Shown: in pieces, positions 2,257 through 57,681 of the stretch
Layout: every line of letters starts with the position of its first letter
Numbering within the stretch: the first letter of the stretch is position 1
DNA from: Utricularia gibba
Taxonomy: Eukaryota > Plantae > Magnoliophyta
DNA length: 64,000 nucleotides
Reading direction: 5' to 3'
Assembly (NCBI GenBank): GCA_002189035.1
Contig: CM007992.1
Span: 3,782,001 to 3,846,000 of the forward strand
Translations under genes and position numbers: made by a program
Notes under the pieces: model-generated
Told to the model about the DNA's origin: nothing
The model's database searches: none
What the model saw: the letters and a program-made list of their open reading frames with translations, nothing else

Positions 2257-3434
2257 TCAGAAATCGAACCCGCCGCTACAGACATTGTCGGAAACAAGGT
2301 CGCCGAGCAACAGTCCCCCGAGGAGCCCAGCTCCCAGTCCCAGCCCCAAGTTGTTGCTTTTCTTAGTCGGTTTCGCCACTGGTGGCGGTGCGTATCCCGC
2401 TTGCGGCGGAGGAGGGTATCCGTACGCAGTCGTATGCTGTTGAGGACCGTAAACTCCGGCTGGCTGCGGCGGATACGCTGTCGCCGGTGGATATACTCCA
2501 ATTTTTCCAGGCCCTCCATGTGGATCTGCAGGTGGGTAATCTCCCGCTGGTTGCGGGGGGTACGCCGTTGCCGGCGGATATACTCCAGTTTTACCGGGAC
2601 CCTCGAATGAATTCTGAGGTGGGTAGACTCCTGGTGGTTGGGGCGGGTACGCCGTCACTGGAGGATATACTCCAGTATTTCCCGGCCCCCAATGTGGATC
2701 TGGAGGTGGGTAACCTCCGGCTAGTTGCGGGGGGTACGCTGTTGCCGGAGGATGTGCTCCAGTTTTTCCGGGGCCCTCGTATGAATTCGGAGGTGGGTAG
2801 ACTCCTGTTGGTTGCGAAGGGTTCACCGTCACTGGAGGATAAACTCCAATTCCCCGGGGTTACCGTATGCACCTAGAGGTGGATACGTTCCTGGTGGTGG
2901 ATAAAGTGAACTGGGACTGGCTTGGTACGCCATATTTGGCTGATTTTCATGTTTTCCAGTAGTAGAGAGCTCAGGAATGGCTGGTTCGTAAAGCGGAGCT
3001 GCGACGGGTTTTCCAATGAACCTGCAGGAAAACGAGATCTGGCCTTTGGATTGGCCGCCGGGCTTCCTCACCTGGTAACTGAGGAATACTTTCCCGTCGG
3101 ATTTGCCTTTCGTTTGAGATAATTCCTTCAAGGCAACGCGGACTTGACCCACTTCCTTATCCCCCAATGCCCGCTGGCAAAGGAGTTTGAAATTTAGCAT
3201 AAGACGATTCATTTGCAGCTCCGCGTCGTCAATAGTGAACTTCATCGGAAAATTCCAGGTTGGGTTGGCGTCTCCCTCGTGATCGACGGAGGTCTTGATT
3301 TTCTGACTGGCTGTTTTGTTCCCGCCGGTGATGGTAACCACCGCGTAAACATCCATCCTAGTCAGCAGGTTGACTTTGCTCAAATCCTTAGCAGATAGAA
3401 GAGTGATCTCCATAACCCGATGATTCATATCCAT
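2257..3434 (-). CDS. SRC2-like C2-domain protein with expanded Pro/Gly/Tyr repeat tail; apparent -1 frameshift at ~2850
   Basis: N-terminal C2 domain (MEITLLSAKDLSKVNLLTRMDVYAVV...NPTWNFPMKF...LSYQVRKPGGQSKGQISFS) and SRC2-type C-terminus (KKSNNLGLGLGAGLLGGLLLGDLVSD). ORFs 2829-3659 and 2257-2832 join if one A is added in GGGGAATTGG. Confidence 0.85.
2445..2847 (-). repeat. Coding tandem repeat, 87-bp (29-aa) unit arranged as a 174-bp higher-order dimer
   Basis: Units of the form GVYPPATAYPPQPA+GxYPPx(NSYE/DPHW/NSFE/DPHG)GPGKT; about 4.5 copies with alternating NS.E and DPH. variants. Confidence 0.85.
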
Positions 3435-3592
3435 CCCTTCTCCCCGGACAGATTCCAAGAAACCAAAGAAAAGCTCAATTTGCGAGTTCGCGGCGAGGAG
3501 CCGAGAAGGGGAGATGTAGAGTACCCAATATACATAGAAGCCGCTGTTGACGAGTCTGCCTGCCAGGTGCCAAGGAAGAGTCAGTCCAAGTA

Positions 3593-3605
3593 ACGTGGCC
3601 GCGTT
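3593..3605. promoter_or_regulatory. Overlapping ABRE (ACGTGGC) and CAMTA/RSRE-type (CCGCGTT) element ~160 bp upstream of the SRC2-like ATG
   Basis: Sequence ACGTGGCCGCGTT. The motifs are established, but function at this site is inferred. Confidence 0.4.
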
Positions 3606-5283
3606 GGCAACCTTCCGCGAGTCAAACCCTATGTTTGGAAAACAAAATATTAATAACATTTTTTTTCACGTAGTTTGACCACTTTTTTCACACATTAAAA
3701 TGAGATTGGCCACTTTTATATATCACCCTATTACTTCTGGGAACTGCTACTCTGCCCCCACATGGTGCTGGCCGTGTTTATTGCTCTCGTTCAGCTACTG
3801 CGTACGTTGCTGCTGGAGCCTCAAGCAGCAGTCAACTGGAAGGACCATTTCCCGATAGGCCTGGCCATCCAGAATACCATGAGTATTTAATGCAGGTATC
3901 ATCATCGACGACACACAGGCTGCACTGTGGACCAGCTTTGTACTTGGTCCAATGGGGATGGGGCGGCAAGCGTTGTAGTGTTTTATGCAGAAGCTTAGCC
4001 GTCTTGCTTGGATTGTTCTTCGGGCTGCGCTGAGGTATTCCTACTGTGTAAACAATGGTGCATGGAAAGTGGGGTCAGATCACTACCTAAGACAACTTCT
4101 TTAGGCCTGAAGGAGAAGAAAGCTTCGGCGAAGCTTGAGCGGCTGGGAGCGTGGCCCTCTCTTCCCAACAAACCTATTTTATCTCTTGCATCTCTGTAAC
4201 CTAAAACCATGTTTGTATCCACAGTCCTTACCTCCTCATAGTATTTTTCATGATAAGCAATTTAAAACGAAAAAAACCACAATGCAAGCTTTGGCTGCAA
4301 GGTAGGTTCTGCACACAATTGTAGTAACTGTACAATAAAAAGGGAAGCAAATTCAACAGTACTAAGTGCCAGAGCAAGCATATGTCATGAAGAAAAAAAG
4401 TGGAGCACAGATATTTGGTCTCCTGAACTAGGATATGGTAGAATACCAAATACATGAAACTTTTATGATTTATGATTTTAGCATTAATCATTTTACCATA
4501 GTGTTTTAGATGAACTCATCATCTATGTGAATTTTTCCCATCTGTTCACAAGTGGTTCACATTGCAAAAGATGTGTGCAAGTCAATTACTACAGTTGTTC
4601 TTTGTTATCATGAACTCATTCATTTCTGTCTAATTCAAATATGAGATTGCACCCCTTTTCAGACATCGTTTCAAGCAAGAGGAATCTTAAATACCTCAAA
4701 GATACCATACGTATGCATAACAACAATCAGCAAGATGTGCTGTTATTCATTCCCTTGATAATGTATACGTACCAAGGAGGGATGATGGAGTTGCACTCTG
4801 ACTGAGGGGTTGGCTATAATGCTGCTCGGAGACTTTTCACCAATTCCTTGGCAATTAAGTTGAATTCTTTCTCCATCTGAATGATTAAGATAGATAAACG
4901 GGTGGCTGAGTTTGATCTCTACAAAGACGACTGTCTGATCAGTGTTTTACTTTTAGTATTACCTCTGCGATGATGGTAACGTCGATGGCCAAGCTTCCAA
5001 AAGGGGTGACATTGGTGTTCATGACCACCAAATTGAGCATCTCTACTTTGCTGAGCAATTTCACCATGATCCCTTTTTGTTTCTCGCAATGAACTCTCAC
5101 GAGAATAAGATTGTGGCATACTCTGGCCTCGACCTCTGGAAGAGAGTGCTTCGATTCGCCCTCCTCCATGATCTGCGATTTTTTAACCAGAACTACTGAT
5201 TCCATCCTTTGTTTAGTTGTATGTTCTTTCAGCATCTTCACTTTCTCTTGAAGGTGCTTCAGATACTTGATCACATCCCCAAG

Positions 5284-11877: not shown

Positions 11878-12574
11878 TTAACTGCGGACGATGCCAGTGT
11901 CTTCCCTCAGAGCTGAAAGGATAGCAGCAGCGATGTCTTGGGCAGGGGGCGGTGAAGCGAATCTTGGTTCATCTAGCAGGGAAACCAACTCACATCCGTT
12001 AATCACTAAAGAAAACAAAACAACCAAAAGTGAAAAGGCTGAGATCACCTCAGCCACGATGGTAGCGTGAAGGAGCGAGCCCCCAAATGGTACAACGTTG
12101 ACGCTAACGACTGTGAGATTGAAATTGTCCAGCTCGGATAGAACCTTGACCAAGACGCTTTTGCGTTTCATGCAGTGCAGTTTGAGGAGGAGCGAGTTCT
12201 GGTTATACACCTTGGCCTCAACTTCCGGTAGCACATGGCCCGTGGCGTCGTCAGTTGGTTGCTCCGCGGCTTGGGATTCTTCAAGTAGCTTGACTCTTCG
12301 GGTGAGGTAATTAATAGAGTCGATGAGCTCCCCGACAAGAGCAACTTGCGGGTCTTGGTCTTGTTCTTGTTCTCTACTCCCCATCCTGGATGGTGCGCGG
12401 ATATGGGGGAAGGATCAGAAACCCAGGAAAGACGATTGGGTGGGAATCCAATAGAGGAAGTGGAAATTGGGGATTTCTCGGCCGAAATGTCCGGTGGGGG
12501 GGCCGATCGGACAAGAAAGCAACAGCATTCTGCATCATCGCCATCTTTGCCCTTACTTTCTTCTCCAATTCCAT
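11878..12574 (-). CDS. Atypical bHLH-IVa-derived HLH+ACT-like protein lacking the basic region
   Basis: Helix-1-like VRAKMAMMQNAV, helix-2-like ELIDSINYLTRRVKLLEE, and ACT-like LPEVEAKV...LKLHCMKRKSVLVKVLSELDNFNLTVVSVNVVPFG. It has the paralogous AE|intron|M last-exon junction. The first intron (12512-12386) is predicted from a weak donor. Confidence 0.7.
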
Positions 12575-13050
12575 TTATGGGCTCGCCATCAGCGAAAGGA
12601 GAGCTTGAAATTTTAAATTAATAACGTAGAAAAGGTCATTTTTCCTTTTTTTTTTTTATAATAATTAGTCGCTGGGACGCGACGCGAGATAATAAACGAC
12701 ACTTGACGGACACGTCGAGATCAAAAACCAGCAACCAGCCACTAGTTTTATCAACCGTTATGGGTGGTCAGTATGTCGTTCGTTACATGAGTGGTCAACC
12801 AGCCGCTATTCCAACTCATTTCTTCTCACTTGAGTGGGGGTTACTTTATGTGTTTTTTTGGATGCAACACACCACAATGAGCAGCAACTTTGCATAACAC
12901 ACAGAACAGAAATCACACCGCAATCGGTGAACTACTCGGGATTTCTCCCTACCGACAGAATTTTGTATCTTTCATCCTCAACCATCACAGCAACGTGCAT
13001 AAGGGGTATGCTAGGCACAACGTGGCCCAGCGCCAACCTCCAGCCACTGC

Positions 13051-14418
13051 TTACTCTTCACAGGGACTGCGGTGGGCTAGGCGTTGGATGGCGGCGCCTA
13101 GTCTTGTGGCGACCTCTATCCCCGTGGCATTGAATTCTTTCTCCATCTACAACAACCCGCGAGAGCAACATAGATTCGCCACGGCGGCGCGTCACTGAGG
13201 TGGTGGTTGGGGAGGGGGTAACTTTTAGTTAACTTTACCTCGGCGTTGATGGTAATATCGAGGGCGAGACCACCCAAGGCAGTGAGATTGGCGGTGACCA
13301 CCGCCAGATGGAGATCCTCCACCTCCCTCAGCAAATTCGCCAATACCCCTTTCTGAATCTCGCACTGGATCCTCACAACCACCTCGTGCTCCTTGATCCT
13401 TGCCTCCACAGCCGGCAGCGCCTGCTCCTCCTCTTCTTCATTCATATCTTCGCGTCCCCTGTTTTTCCCAAATCCATCGATTAGAGATTTTCTCACCAAC
13501 ACCCCCCAATCCCGCGACTGATTCTCTGCTTTTTCTTCCAATATTTGCACTTGCTCTTGGAGGTGCTTCAGGTAGTTGATTGTACTACCCAGTACCGAAT
13601 TTTTATCCATCTGAAACAGTATCAGCGAATCAGGTAAAAGTGATAGATTTCATAGCATAAAGTGAACTTTTCGTAGGAGGCAAACAAACTTTCTTGATGC
13701 CGGGAACAATGGCGGAGAGAGCAGAGAAACGCTGGCCCAGCAGCTCCCGGCGCTTACGTTCAGCGATAATGTGGTCATATGTCTGCTCAGGAGGCCTGAT
13801 TCTGCTGTTTTTCTTACCCGGAGGCGCGGTTGCGGCTTTCGGTAGATCCCCTCTCCCTGCAGTAGAACTGGAACACCTTAGTGCTTCTGAAACAGCAGCT
13901 TCCTCTTCTGGGGTCAACTCTCCTCTGGTTTGTCTCTTCTCACTGTTTTTTTGATCCCCATTCAGCTTCCCGAAGCTTATAACTATCGGAGCAGAAGAAC
14001 CTTTGCAGAGCTTCTTCCTTGTGCTACCAGAACTTTTCGTCTTCTTCGTTGGCTCAGGTGGAGCTGGAGCTGCTAAGGCTGCCTCTAAACTTCGCTGGAG
14101 ATCCGCAAGCTCGTCTTCGTCGAACAAGTCATCCATGAAAACACAGGTTTCCTCCAGTCCCTGTAAACAAAAAAAAAAAAAAAAAAAACATAGAGCTGCT
14201 GGCGGTGATGAAATAATCGAAAGTAACGACGGAAGATGTGGAACTGGGTAATGGCGAATTCAACGAAAGGTTGATAAATACCAATCTTTAATACAGCATA
14301 TATGACGGCAATGAACAGTGAAGAGTTGTTCATTGCCACGCAGCCGAGATGCAGGAAGTGTGTGGCAGTTAGGTGATTGCTTTACCGTTTCAGATAGTGC
14401 GGAGGAATCCATCTCCAT
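13051..14418 (-). CDS. bHLH subgroup IVa transcription factor (bHLH18/25-like), intact 4-exon copy
   Basis: Exons 14418-14386, 14160-13690, 13610-13239 and 13146-13051 splice in frame: DHIIAERKRRELLGQRFSALSAIVPGIKK|MDKNSVLGSTINYLKHLQE plus C-terminal ACT-like domain. Confidence 0.9.
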
Positions 14419-41798: not shown

Positions 41799-43286
41799 CT
41801 ACAGCTTGACAACTTCAGGGATGAAAACGGGGTATCTCTCGATGCAATCGACCCAGGGGCTATCCTCCGGGCATTTTTTTACAGTCCTGTTGCATTTCCA
41901 AACTGCGCTGTTACACTTGGAATCCACTCCCGAACGCAATCTGCCATACTCTGTCACCTTTCTTCATCCTCCCTTTAGCTTCAATGTAAGCGATTTCGTA
42001 CCAGAGTGAAGACGAAGACGTGTTTCCAAAGCGGTGAAGCGTCATGCGAGATGCCTCAACGTGTTCCGCAGAAAGCTGGAGACTCTTCTGCAATTCGTCA
42101 ATCACAGCACGACCTCCGGCGTGGATGCAAAAGTGTTCGAAAGCTAGTTTGAAATCGGGTATGTAGGGCTTCCACTTGGGATTGAAAATCTTCCTTCCAA
42201 TTAGTGTTAACAGAAACAGGAGCTGCTCTGACGCCGGGAGAACTAAAGGCCCGATGGTGGTGATGTTGGATTTCAGGGCTTCTCCGGCGATAACCATCAA
42301 ATCTTTAGACAGATCTATGCCAACCTTACCCTGAGGATCTTCTTGTTCGTAAACGCATTTGTAAGCTTTGTCCTCCGAGCCTTTATGGGTTCGGACGACG
42401 TGGACGAGCTTGTATTTGGCACGGCGGCTGTGGCGGCGTTTATTGGAGAGGAGAACTGCGGCGCCGCCCATTCTGAAGAGACAGTTGGGGAGGAGCATTG
42501 CCCTCTCCGATCCCCTGTAGTAGTTGGGGGTGATGATCTCGGTACTCACGACCAGCGCATTGGAATCGGGATGAACCTGGAGCAAATCCCTGGCCAAATC
42601 AATGGAAATCAAGCCTGCGCTGCACCCATGCCTGAAAGATTGAAGCTTTTGATATTGCTCCTGAGCTTGTACTTATTGACCACCATTGCTGAAAAGGATG
42701 GAGTGGGTGAAAACAGACTGCAATTGACGATCAGAATATCGATATCCTTAGGCTTGATTCCAGTTTTGGTCATCAAGGCGTCGATGGAGGAAAAGATCAC
42801 CTCCTCCGCTTCGCTCCTAGCGGCCTCCATAGTGGGCGTGGGAGGAATAAAATGAATAGCAGGGGGTAAACATGTTTCTTCCCCAAGACCCGATCTTTCG
42901 AGAATTCTCATCTGGAACTCGACGCTTTTGGGATTGTCCTTGAGAATCAAGCGGGAATGCTCCATAAATGTTGAGAAGGGAACTCTGCAGGTGACCGGGG
43001 GCTTGTAGCAGGTGTAATCAACTAGGTAAATGGAGCGTGGCTTCGACATGAAGTAGATGGTGGGGATGATGATGGCTAAGAAAACAGAAGAGAGAAGCAC
43101 GACAAGGTCCATGCTAAGGAAACTCCAAATCTTGGTAAGTATCTCGTCGGGGTTGTGGAAGAGCTGTGGAGCTACGGCTACGACGATGGGTATGAGTAGC
43201 AAGGTGAGGAAGTTGTTGACGGTGTACTGGTATCCCAGCTTCACGTACTTGAGGTGCTTAGCTACTGGCCGCGTCGGCGTCGGCAT
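41799..43286 (-). CDS. KCS6: 3-ketoacyl-CoA synthase, KCS6/CER6(CUT1)-like; two apparent single-base indels
   Basis: [10 protein letters not shown] start, [23 protein letters not shown](C)[40 protein letters not shown]-terminal [16 protein letters not shown]. Indels at ~42626 (-1) and ~41919 (+1). Confidence 0.88.
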
Positions 43287-45284
43287 CTTGTTCCGGTTGT
43301 ATGCGTGTGCTGTATGAATTTGGATTTCGAAAGAGAGTTGGGGGAAGGGAGATGAATTTAAAGACGGGGGAAAGAAACAGGGAAGAAGGCGGATTGTGGT
43401 GCGCTGGTGCGGGTGCGGGTGGTGTTGACAGAGGAGCAGCATTCAATGACACAGGTGAGGAGTTTAATGAACCGGCGCCTCAACAGTCGCTTCGCTTCGC
43501 TTCCCTTCCCCTCCCCTTAGCTGGACTGGTACTGCACCGGCTAACTGGACTAGACTTTTTTTATCTTCTATTTTTCCAAAAAGAATTCACACGCAAAAAA
43601 GGAGGGGATATTTAAGTAGTGTTCATTAATATTTATTCGCATTATTTATACTTTCCGAAAAATATAAAATATAAGTAAAAATAATTTATAAAAATAGATA
43701 TCTTACTATTTTTAATTATTACTGTTCATATAACTTGATTTTAAAAAGATTTTTACTATAATTAAAAATAAAAATTGATTATATTTCGTGAGCAAATTAT
43801 TTTTATTATTTCAAAAATAGAAATAATTAGGAAAAATATTTCGAATTGTGTGAAGCTTGTGGAGACAAGTGATGAACTTAATGGTTATAGTGTGGTCGGC
43901 GACAAGAAGATGAATCACTGGGGAGCGCCCGTAAATCAACGAGTTGTTAGTGAGCGTTCCTTCACTGTGGAACCGTTACAATTATTTCATTCTGATATGC
44001 CGAAAATCTCATTCATTCAAAAACTATGAGGTATACTGCTGTAGACAATGTGGGGGCATCATCACTCGAGTCGAGGAGTAGTTATCGACAATTATGGCAG
44101 ATATTGGGGATTCGGGAAAACATTCCAAGGTCGGTTACCTTTTACTGCGTCTGACTGGATGTGGGTGTGGTTGTGCAATAAACTTAAGATTCTATTGCAA
44201 TTTGCAGTGCAACAGATCTAGAGAGAAAGCTCCACATTTGACTGCAACTAATTCATCTAGCCTAGACTAGAATGTGCGGTGAAAAGGATGGATGGGCCGC
44301 GGAGAGTCATCCGATTCTACAAACGCGTTTTTTCTTTTATTGCGAGTTTATTTATTTCGGAAGAAGGAGATTCGATCACGTCATGTGGTGACTGGTGTGT
44401 GTACATGGGCTGGGATGGATGGGTTACAAAATCACGGTTTTACTGATTGATTTGAGTTGCGCCGAGTGTCCAGTGGTGCCCTCCGTCAATTTTGAACTTG
44501 GTCTGGGTCTTTCAAGCTAAGAATGTTGTCAAGGCGCAAGAATACAGAAAGCCATTCCTGCCTGCAGTGCATGTGCCATTGTTGACTTGGATGCGTAATT
44601 TGGGATGGGGTCTTGCTCTAACGGAAATATCAGAGCAAGATTGAAATATAGGTTAGTAAAGTTACGGGGACATGTGTTCCAGCGGATACCGTGACTGGTT
44701 AAGGCCAGCCGATGACGGAAGGTGGAATGCCAATTTGTGGGTGGATGGGAGTTGTTGGGTTGACTCTAGGAAGACCGTTTTCTCTGTCTTGGAAACTCAG
44801 GATTCCAATATGGACCCACGTCTCCTTGATATGTGTGGTGTGAACTCTACTCTACCCAATTCAAGAGCTCGGTCCCAGGCCACGCCACGCCCGAGACAGA
44901 GGAGTCTTTGAGGAGAAACACAAACTATTATGTGTCCATTGACACGCACACGCTGCCAGTGCCTGTGGAGGAAAAGGATGGGTTTGTGTCTGAGCTTGAT
45001 AAAACTCAACGTGCAACAGCCAGCCACCAGCCAGCATGTGGGTGACTGCTGCTCCGCCGTCCTTCTGCCAGAAAATATTAACTGTGCATGGTGACACCTT
45101 ACGTTCCATCTCCACATGCTTCTCTATTTCAATAAAGTCATATGGACCTATCTTCCTCAATCACCTATTCCTGTGGAATCTATCTATATCACATGATGTT
45201 TTCGTTTGGCTAATGTTGGGGTAGGAGGTGCGCATTTTTTCTTCAACAACTTCGGTACTTCAGTATTTCGCCAGTACAAATATT

Positions 45285-56367: not shown

Positions 56368-57681
56368 ATGGCGGAGAGTCATGAGAATGATAAGAATATT
56401 GAAATATGGAAGATCAAGAAGTTGATAAAGGCTCTAGAGTCTGCAAGAGGAAACGGTACTAGTATGATATCACTCATCATTCCACCTGGTGATCAAATAG
56501 CACGTGTGACTAAGATGCTTGCTGAAGAGTATGGCACTGCCTCAAATATCAAAAGTAGGGTGAATCGTCAATCTGTGCTTGGTGCCATTACTTCTGCACA
56601 GCAGAAACTGAAACTGTATAACAAGGTTCCTGCTAATGGTCTAGTGCTATACACTGGAACCATAGTGACTGATGATGGAAAAGAAAGAAAGATGACCTTC
56701 GACTTTGCTCCCTTCAAGCCCATAAATGCTTCTCTATATCTTTGTGACAACAAGTTCCATACAGAACCTTTGACTCAACTCTTAGAGTCTGATGAGAAGT
56801 TTGGCTTTATAGTCATGGATGGAAACGGCACCCTTTTTGGCACATTAAGCGGCAACACTAGAGAGGTACTACACAAATTCACTGTTGACCTTCCCAAGAA
56901 GCATGGAAGAGGTGGACAGTCAGCTCTTCGTTTTGCCCGTCTTCGAATGGAGAAGCGGCACAACTATGTGAGAAAGACTGCTGAACTGGCAACGCAGTTT
57001 TTCATAAATCCTGCAACTAGTCAGCCAAATATATCTGGCCTAATACTTGCTGGATCTGCTGACTTCAAGACTGAACTAAGTCAGTCGGATATGTTTGATC
57101 CACGCCTGCAGGCCAAGATATTAAATGTTGTAGATGTGTCATATGGAGGGGAAAATGGTTTCAATCAGGCTATTGAATTGTCTGCTGAAATTCTATCCAA
57201 CGTGAAGTTCATCCAAGAGAAGCGCTTAATTGGGAAATTTTTTGAAGAAATCAGCCAGGACACAGGAAAGTACATTTTTAGTGTGGAGGACACATTAAAA
57301 GCTTTGGAGATGGGAGCTGTAGAAACACTGATTGTGTGGGAAAACTTGGACATTAACCGTTATACCCTCAAAAACAGTGTCTCCAATGAGATTGTGATTA
57401 AAAATTTTAATAAGGATCAAGAGAATGATTCAAGCAACTTCAAGGACCCAGCCACCGGAGCAGAACTGGAGGTTCAGGAGAAGAAGCCATTACTGGAGTG
57501 GTTTGCCGAAGAGTACAGAAATTTTGGGTGCTCTCTTGAGTTTGTGACAAATCGGTCTCAAGAAGGTTCACAGTTTTGCCGTGGTTTTGGCGGCATTGGG
57601 GGTATCCTTCGTTACCAGGTTGACATTCGCTCCTTTGATGAACCATCTGATGAAGGAGAATATGATGAGGATTCAGATTGA
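56368..57681 (+). CDS. ERF1: Eukaryotic peptide chain release factor 1; intronless CDS, 5'-UTR intron ~55814-56358
   Basis: Intact 437-aa ORF with TASNIKS, YLCDNKF and GRGGQS motifs. Confidence 0.97.

Follow-up and report, generated by a model that had tools for sequence, protein, structure and literature searches.

Can a cluster of genes for transcription factors also carry, among them, the gene for a protein that holds those factors in check? This question is raised by a window of Utricularia gibba DNA (the whole stretch that was analysed, 64,000 nucleotides long), in which three genes derived from basic helix-loop-helix (bHLH) genes of clade IVa stand in tandem on the minus strand. The factors of subgroup IVa (BIS, TSAR, NAI1 and their relatives) activate iridoid, saponin and ER-body defence programmes, and their genes often form tandem clusters. 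How the output of these factors is restrained is, to our knowledge, poorly known. An earlier note on this DNA had proposed that the middle gene is a built-in inhibitor, a relative that lost the DNA-binding basic region, kept its helix-loop-helix and ACT-like domain, and evolved within the array.

Comparison of the locus with its relatives suggests another reading, to which a probability of about 60% may be given. The middle gene would be a copy of an old core-Lamiales lineage that derives from clade IVa and has no exon 1, and this copy would have been recently disabled or else be rescued by splicing.

The gene array

The DNA of the window comes from a plant and includes Copia elements; Lamiales supply all of the closest protein relatives of its bHLH pieces. 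The array and its surroundings contain the following features.

13051-14136, minus strand: upstream neighbour, an intact full-length clade-IVa bHLH gene with exons at 14136-13690, 13610-13239 and 13146-13051 and canonical introns
11878-12384, minus strand: middle gene, present as an ORF with an unspliced length of 168 aa
4817-11157, minus strand: downstream neighbour, a full-length-type clade-IVa bHLH pseudogene
11157-10672, minus strand: exon 1 of the downstream pseudogene, with an in-frame stop at 10854-10852
5295-4963 and 4876-4817, minus strand: exons 2 and 3 of the downstream pseudogene, 5.3 kb from exon 1 and behind a Copia element
9553-8858 (gag) and 8065-6470 (RT): Copia element in intron 1 of the downstream pseudogene
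56368-57681, plus strand: intronless intact eRF1 ORF of 437 aa with all three eRF1 domains
42609-43442, minus strand: KCS/FAE1-type condensing-enzyme ORF fragment (context only)
2829-3659, minus strand: C2-domain ORF (context only)

The upstream full-length bHLH is a candidate partner of the middle gene. It is fast-evolving, with a terminal branch of 1.19 against a median of 0.15. Its ACT-like domain (13239-13610) reads NLTALGG in place of NV.PFGS, with the Phe of a Phe-Gly pair replaced, and this pair is invariant among eleven aligned sequences of the short family described below. The partner choice of the upstream gene may have changed. The downstream neighbour, the paralog with which the earlier note had compared the middle gene, is no intact gene but a pseudogene interrupted by the Copia element, and its exon 2 has lost the acceptor and the Met-Asp-Lys start. 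Of the three copies, this downstream exon 2 is the most conservative, with 73% identity to a Buddleja full-length gene.

Content of the middle gene

Most of what the middle gene retains is held in one exon.

12049-12384, minus strand: main exon of the middle gene, homologue of bHLH-IVa exon 2, 112 codons, intact

The main exon begins at a Met homologous to that of the family's MDK and encodes helix 2 and its coiled-coil-like extension, an acidic linker, and that part of the ACT-like domain which has the order beta-beta-alpha-beta-beta. These parts were assigned from the ORF translation, Pfam, BLASTP, the alignment of the short family and the fold of the orthologue P0013; the exons of the middle gene were searched singly. 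Codons 1-112 match PF22754 (plant bHLH ACT-like) at 31 bits (E 3e-7; Pfam cut-off 27.6) and align by BLASTP with exon 2 of the upstream gene (13610-13239) at 28% identity (E 5e-12) over helix 2 and the ACT-like region. The alignment of the main exon extends from the exon-2 Met to the donor GT that follows ...AE, and the intron falls inside the HLH, as in subgroup IVa. The conserved positions of the family are retained in helix 2 (VALVGELIDSINYLTRRVKLLEE) as well as in the ACT core (LPEVEAKV...LKLHCMKRKSVLVKVLSELDNFNLTVVSVNVVPFG...TIVAE). The PF22754 match and the exon-2 alignment thus bear out the earlier observation that helix 2 and the ACT-like domain are kept.

Identity between the middle gene and its neighbours is only 28-39%. 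At the DNA level, an alignment of the middle and upstream genes was tried and set aside because the divergence is too great for it to be useful, and the comparison was moved to the protein and codon level. A word-indexed search of a 5.8-billion-protein collection with the 168-aa unspliced ORF returned 341 candidates, none of them significant, so that the collection contains neither an annotated protein from the locus nor a close relative with a length of 92-294 aa.

The 5′ region and helix 1

The view of the middle gene as a complete HLH protein depends on sequence upstream of the main exon, where three features had been proposed.

12513-12574, minus strand: exon 1 of the earlier note (MELEKKVRAKMAMMQNAVAF; MELEKK...AVAF), whose coding status or kinship with helix 1 is unsupported
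12386-12512, minus strand: intron of the earlier note, 127 nt, 57% GC, weak donor CTT/GTCCGA
12655-12660, minus strand: TATAAA with an A-run after it, 86 nt upstream of the ATG at 12574, a putative element

In that model, the MELEKK...AVAF exon is spliced across 12512/12386, replaces the basic region of an array paralog, and yields a local HLH+ACT inhibitor. Several observations are in its favour. The GT at 12512/11 and the AG at 12387/86 do join the ATG at 12574 in frame, and the TATA-like element, placed by the note at about 85 bp upstream, is found where it was expected. The acceptor 'cag' of the proposed intron is what is left of the ancestral intron-1 acceptor, now set off from the ATG by an additional G, and annotations in Buddleja, Sesamum alatum and Fraxinus likewise splice a non-homologous upstream exon onto exon 2.

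Against the model, no signal of helix 1 is present. Pfam gives no match, HLH included, for the 66-aa ORF at 12574-12374, which contains MELEKKVRAKMAMMQNAV. An HMM of the basic region and helix 1 built from 87 clade-IVa proteins gives no match in any of the frames of 13050-12385, even when filters are switched off and E values of up to 100 are admitted; on the two neighbours the same HMM scores 74.6 and 66.7 bits. A tblastn search of 13050-12385 with a full-length exon 1 also gives no match. The HMM and tblastn results therefore confirm that neither the basic region nor the N-terminal half lies between 12385 and 13050, and they contradict the helix-1 pattern.

The proposed intron joins its exons in frame as described, but its reality is doubtful. 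An equally good in-frame ATG..GT..AG model to that acceptor is obtained from 79% of shuffled upstream sequences. The intron is also GC-rich and its donor weak; the AT-rich introns of the array (intron 1 of the upstream gene and intron 2 of the middle gene) have 36-39% GC, and intron 2 of the upstream gene has 54%. By tblastn, the 20-residue mini-exon peptide has no counterpart in six orthologous loci. Among nine short orthologues, the ancestral 'cag' before the ATG is kept in four and lost in five, and in five of the nine the annotated protein starts at the exon-2 ATG. Taken with the phylogenetic grouping described below, these observations leave the model of a local HLH+ACT inhibitor with a very low probability, and the features that give the middle gene the look of a complete HLH protein are not real.

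If transcribed, the mini-exon at 12513-12574 could serve as an upstream ORF. Chimeric splicing from the exon-1 donor of the upstream gene to the exon-2 acceptor of the middle gene was also considered and rejected; the extra G before the ATG puts this splice out of frame, and a stop follows after three codons.

A short helix-2 and ACT family in Lamiales

The missing exon is not peculiar to Utricularia. A phmmer search against 1.84 billion representatives gave 577 listed relatives of the middle gene, and all of these listed matches are IVa-type proteins or fragments thereof. The best are only 40-51% identical, and many are short proteins of Lamiales whose first residue is the exon-2 Met. Short proteins without a basic region occur in Sesamum radiatum, S. 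alatum, Castilleja, Rehmannia, Striga asiatica, S. hermonthica, Penstemon, Buddleja and Fraxinus, to which a profile search adds short proteins with PF22754 only from Paulownia, Rehmannia, Olea, Forsythia, Abeliophyllum and Fraxinus.

Eleven loci of short genes were fetched and nine were mapped, and the nine mapped loci carry the same two conserved junctions. An HMM scan of 1.5 kb upstream finds no basic/helix-1 exon at eight loci (the Paulownia locus L009 lies outside the scan), and tblastn finds none within about 6-10 kb upstream at six loci. The lone upstream exon-1 match, in S. radiatum, belongs to a separate neighbouring full-length gene. The entries that bear on pairing and on the Oleaceae are these.

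L003 4049-7050 and 10001-10336, and L009: pairing entries of S. radiatum and Paulownia (proteins P0173, P0174 and P0157)
L006, L010 and L011: short entries of Oleaceae (proteins P0141, P0169, P0176, P0178, P0183, P0184 and P0221)

The short gene of S. radiatum has a full-length IVa gene as its neighbour, 3 kb upstream and on the same strand. The short gene Pfo_019299 of Paulownia fortunei and the full-length Pfo_019298 have consecutive locus tags; in L009, the 10 kb upstream of the Paulownia short gene contain no listed gene, so that this pair is linked by its tags, at a spacing that was not seen. These arrangements suggest a conserved pairing of short and full-length genes in Sesamum and in this window, and possibly in Paulownia. 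Within the Oleaceae, two short helix-2+ACT paralogs are common to Olea and Fraxinus, one of which is also found in Forsythia and Abeliophyllum. The Oleaceae genes may have lost exon 1 independently, or they may go back to the same old event.

Four further short proteins, P0160 (Davidia), P0164 (Ilex), P0168 (Cinchona) and P0247 (Sesamum indicum), contain the ACT-like part only; in the tree, each has a very short branch and a full-length gene of its own species as neighbour. They probably represent incomplete annotations of full-length genes or fragments of very recent origin, and not members of the old lineage.

Phylogenetic placement

A tree was calculated by quick searches from 89 segments that run from helix 2 to the C-terminus (149 columns). 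Sister to the middle gene in this tree is the S. radiatum short gene P0007 (SH-aLRT 92); a proline-containing insertion close behind the start is common to the two. Together, they fall within a clade (support 95-96) of 16 short genes and one full-length gene, and the short clade consists of two sub-lineages, each with members from Rehmannia, Paulownia, Striga and Sesamum. Short genes from the Oleaceae are grouped in a separate clade (support 99). Of the two neighbours, the downstream pseudogene is placed among ordinary full-length Lamiales genes, and the upstream gene among full-length genes with no firm place. Removal of the upstream gene leaves the placement of the middle gene the same, and with the middle gene removed the upstream gene stays outside the short clade.

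The tree thus places the middle gene within Lamiales clade IVa, as the earlier note had supposed, but with the exon-1-less genes of Sesamum, Paulownia, Rehmannia, Castilleja and Striga and not with the neighbours of its own cluster. The idea of an activator and inhibitor pair that evolved locally is made less likely by this grouping, which holds whether or not the upstream neighbour is in the tree. An AU test, however, does not reject a tree joining the middle and upstream genes (dlnL 1.41, p 0.46), a comparison made on 149 columns and between two long branches, and a local origin therefore keeps some probability.

The sole full-length bHLH within the short clade is P0104 of Penstemon smallii (275 aa). 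Either this protein is the full-length sister of the short lineage that survived, or its position points to more than one loss of exon 1.

Selection on the short genes

The short family is under purifying selection, with dN/dS of about 0.4. Pairwise values were calculated for the short genes, and a branch model was fitted with our own GY94 implementation to nine short genes over 86 ungapped exon-2 codons.

Core-Lamiales short genes, pairwise: dN/dS 0.14-0.45
Striga pair: dN 0.098, dS 0.313, dN/dS 0.31
Oleaceae short genes, pairwise: dN/dS 0.44-0.58
Branch model: background omega 0.40, branch of the middle gene 0.29

The branch of the middle gene does not differ from the background (p 0.40), and for exon 2, the exon covered by the model, an omega of 1 on this branch is rejected (2dlnL 12.6, p 4e-4). 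The dN/dS near 1 that would have told against the earlier note is therefore not found. Since omega is 0.29 and neutrality is rejected, the very long terminal branch of the middle gene reflects time or lineage rate and not a long neutral decay. On a branch so constrained, any inactivation of the middle gene must be recent.

The last exon and its frameshift

Evidence for such an inactivation comes from the 3′ end of the gene, which has the following parts.

11973-12048, minus strand: intron 2, 76 nt, 39% GC, T-rich, at the conserved phase-0 position GAG/GT...AG/ATG
11878-11972, minus strand: last-exon homologue, with a 1-nt deletion between 11962 and 11961
11989-11990, minus strand: alternative AG, which gives a 60-nt intron from the donor at 12048 (69 nt from the GT at 12057) and restores the frame

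Ten homologues, both neighbours included, open the last exon with AG/NNN NNN NNN GAA TTY, where the middle gene has ATG AAC CAA GA-TTC, and the deletion hits the fourth codon of its last exon. The last-exon junction that the earlier note had seen as shared is therefore present in its position, with the homologous GAG/GT and AG/ATG places, and lost in its reading frame. Canonical splicing reads MNQDSLHRPLPKTSLLLSFQL up to a stop at 11909-11907, and the conserved C-terminal peptide (FASPPPAQDIAAAILSALREDTGIVRS, stop at 11880-11878) sits in the other frame. In the model of P0013, a peptide of the FASPPPAQDIAAAILSALREDTGIVRS type forms the last ACT helix. As a result of the single deletion, canonical splicing is out of frame and the final ACT helix is lost. 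In published work, ACT-like domains without one element were insoluble (PMC10175843).

The frame can be restored only through the AG at 11990/11989, 16 nt upstream of the canonical acceptor, or by intron retention. This acceptor is weak because the sequence upstream of it is purine-rich. A strong-looking AG at 12007/12006 was examined and rejected, as it would give a 43-nt intron followed by an immediate stop.

One way to keep the middle gene intact and functional is to regard the deletion as an assembly or consensus error. The rest of the gene looks constrained, and the frame downstream of the deletion is open and conserved, as an error of this kind would have it. The missing base, on the other hand, belongs to a run of two (GAA to GA) and not to a long homopolymer, where consensus errors concentrate, and an error is accordingly improbable.

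At the other extreme, the middle gene could be a plain dead relic, a decaying fragment in a collapsing array, with the frameshift marking its death and the conserved features as leftovers. The deletion itself, the stop, Copia insertion and lost acceptor of the downstream pseudogene, the absence of a protein of this locus from the 5.8-billion-protein collection, the several upstream ATGs that precede 12384 and the very long terminal branch all agree with such a fate. They are countered by an intact exon 2 with its 112-codon ORF and by a branch dN/dS that is not above the family background. They are countered as well by the peptide after the deletion, which is open to the usual stop of the family and close to that of the Buddleja orthologue (PAQDIAAAILSAL vs PAQDIVAALRSAL). 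A simple relic is thus an unlikely description of the gene, somewhat less so than a sequence error.

The preferred reading, a copy of an old short lineage, allows two states for the copy in the window. That it is functional at present, through the alternative acceptor or because the deletion is a sequence error, has appreciably less than an even chance; the rest of the probability falls to recent inactivation. The frameshifted copy may do nothing at all.

Proposed mechanism

As judged from the gene structures, the lineage would have lost with exon 1 the activation region, the basic region and helix 1, and would have retained helix 2, the coiled-coil extension and the ACT-like dimerisation domain. 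Translation of the middle gene probably starts at the exon-2 Met at 12384, as in most orthologues, and not at the upstream mini-exon. The short proteins, presumably unable to bind DNA, could pair with full-length IVa factors, which are often encoded adjacently. By analogy with R, GL3 and SCREAM, pairing would run through ACT-ACT contacts and perhaps also through a coiled coil of helix 2. The resulting complexes would have one basic region or none, by which activation may be lowered or retuned in the manner of a microProtein. The copy in the window would be newly disabled, or dependent on the weak in-frame acceptor 16 nt upstream.

The dimerisation and titration steps of this scheme are drawn from other bHLH subfamilies and would hold for the short proteins by analogy. 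A fuller version, in which the half-HLH+ACT proteins of core Lamiales and, jointly with them or separately, of Oleaceae act in trans through ACT-ACT contacts and the window copy works by means of the 60-nt intron, is possible but rather unlikely, with roughly one chance in four in its favour.

Significance

Relatives that are conserved, under selection and dead for DNA binding would be a ready candidate for the restraint of IVa factors. A short gene stands directly beside a full-length gene at least in S. radiatum and in this window. The idea of a candidate non-DNA-binding partner next to full-length IVa genes gains comparative support from the conservation of the short genes in several Lamiales families and from the purifying selection on them. 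The short family would also be a natural test of whether ACT-like domains work in trans, and a straightforward one, since intact members are available in Paulownia, Rehmannia, Sesamum, Striga and Olea. If the scheme is true, the ACT-like domain would be a new microProtein module that sets the output of regulators of specialised metabolism. For the window itself, the copy at hand is a damaged one.

Comparison with known systems

The descent of the middle gene from subgroup IVa, which includes Arabidopsis bHLH18/19/20(NAI1)/25, Catharanthus BIS1-3 and Medicago TSAR1-3, is clear. Common to both are helix 2, an intron placed within the HLH, the ACT-like domain, the junction of the last exon and the tandem arrangement with full-length members. 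Unlike the members of subgroup IVa, the middle gene has no basic region (of the H-I-I-A-E-R-K-R-R-E type), no helix 1 and no N-terminal half, and its last exon is frameshifted; with the first three of these missing, it does not belong to the bHLH transcription factors. In core angiosperms, IVa genes commonly occur in clusters (PMC7833464).

Derivatives of subgroup IVa without a basic region have a precedent in legumes, where GmbHLH105, GmbHLH106 and LjbHLH021 lack this region and cluster together, with no functional study (PMC7901066). They show independently that such derivatives persist. They belong to another order, however, and are reported to lack the basic region only, with helix 1 kept, and they almost certainly arose in a separate event.

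Among inhibitory HLH proteins, Id, PRE/KIDARI and IBH1 retain the whole helix-loop-helix and act by poisoning the four-helix bundle. The outcome proposed here is the same, in that a partner without a DNA-binding surface would lower the activity of full-length bHLH dimers. The middle gene differs in having no helix 1, and its pairing would run through the ACT-like domain and helix 2. Without helix 1, the analogy with dominant-negative proteins of the Id/PRE type does not apply as the earlier note had drawn it; the basic-region-less relative is better described as a candidate non-DNA-binding partner than as an inhibitor of the HLH type.

MicroProteins such as LITTLE ZIPPER, miP1a/b and MIF are small, consist of the interaction part only, and in some cases are encoded by separate genes. 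By its predicted content, the middle gene, which keeps helix 2 and the ACT-like domain only, resembles them in size and composition, with a putative role in interaction. The short proteins, at 133-150 residues and with two interaction elements, stand at the large end of the class. In a limited full-text search of the literature, neither free-standing helix-2+ACT genes nor ACT-like microProteins were found to be described.

The closest parallel for the proposed contacts is found in maize R, GL3 and SCREAM, whose ACT-like domains form homo- and heterodimers and influence partner choice and DNA binding (PMC10175843, PMC8892516). In these proteins, the ACT-like domain acts in cis with the bHLH, whereas in the short family of Lamiales it would act in trans, as a free-standing unit.
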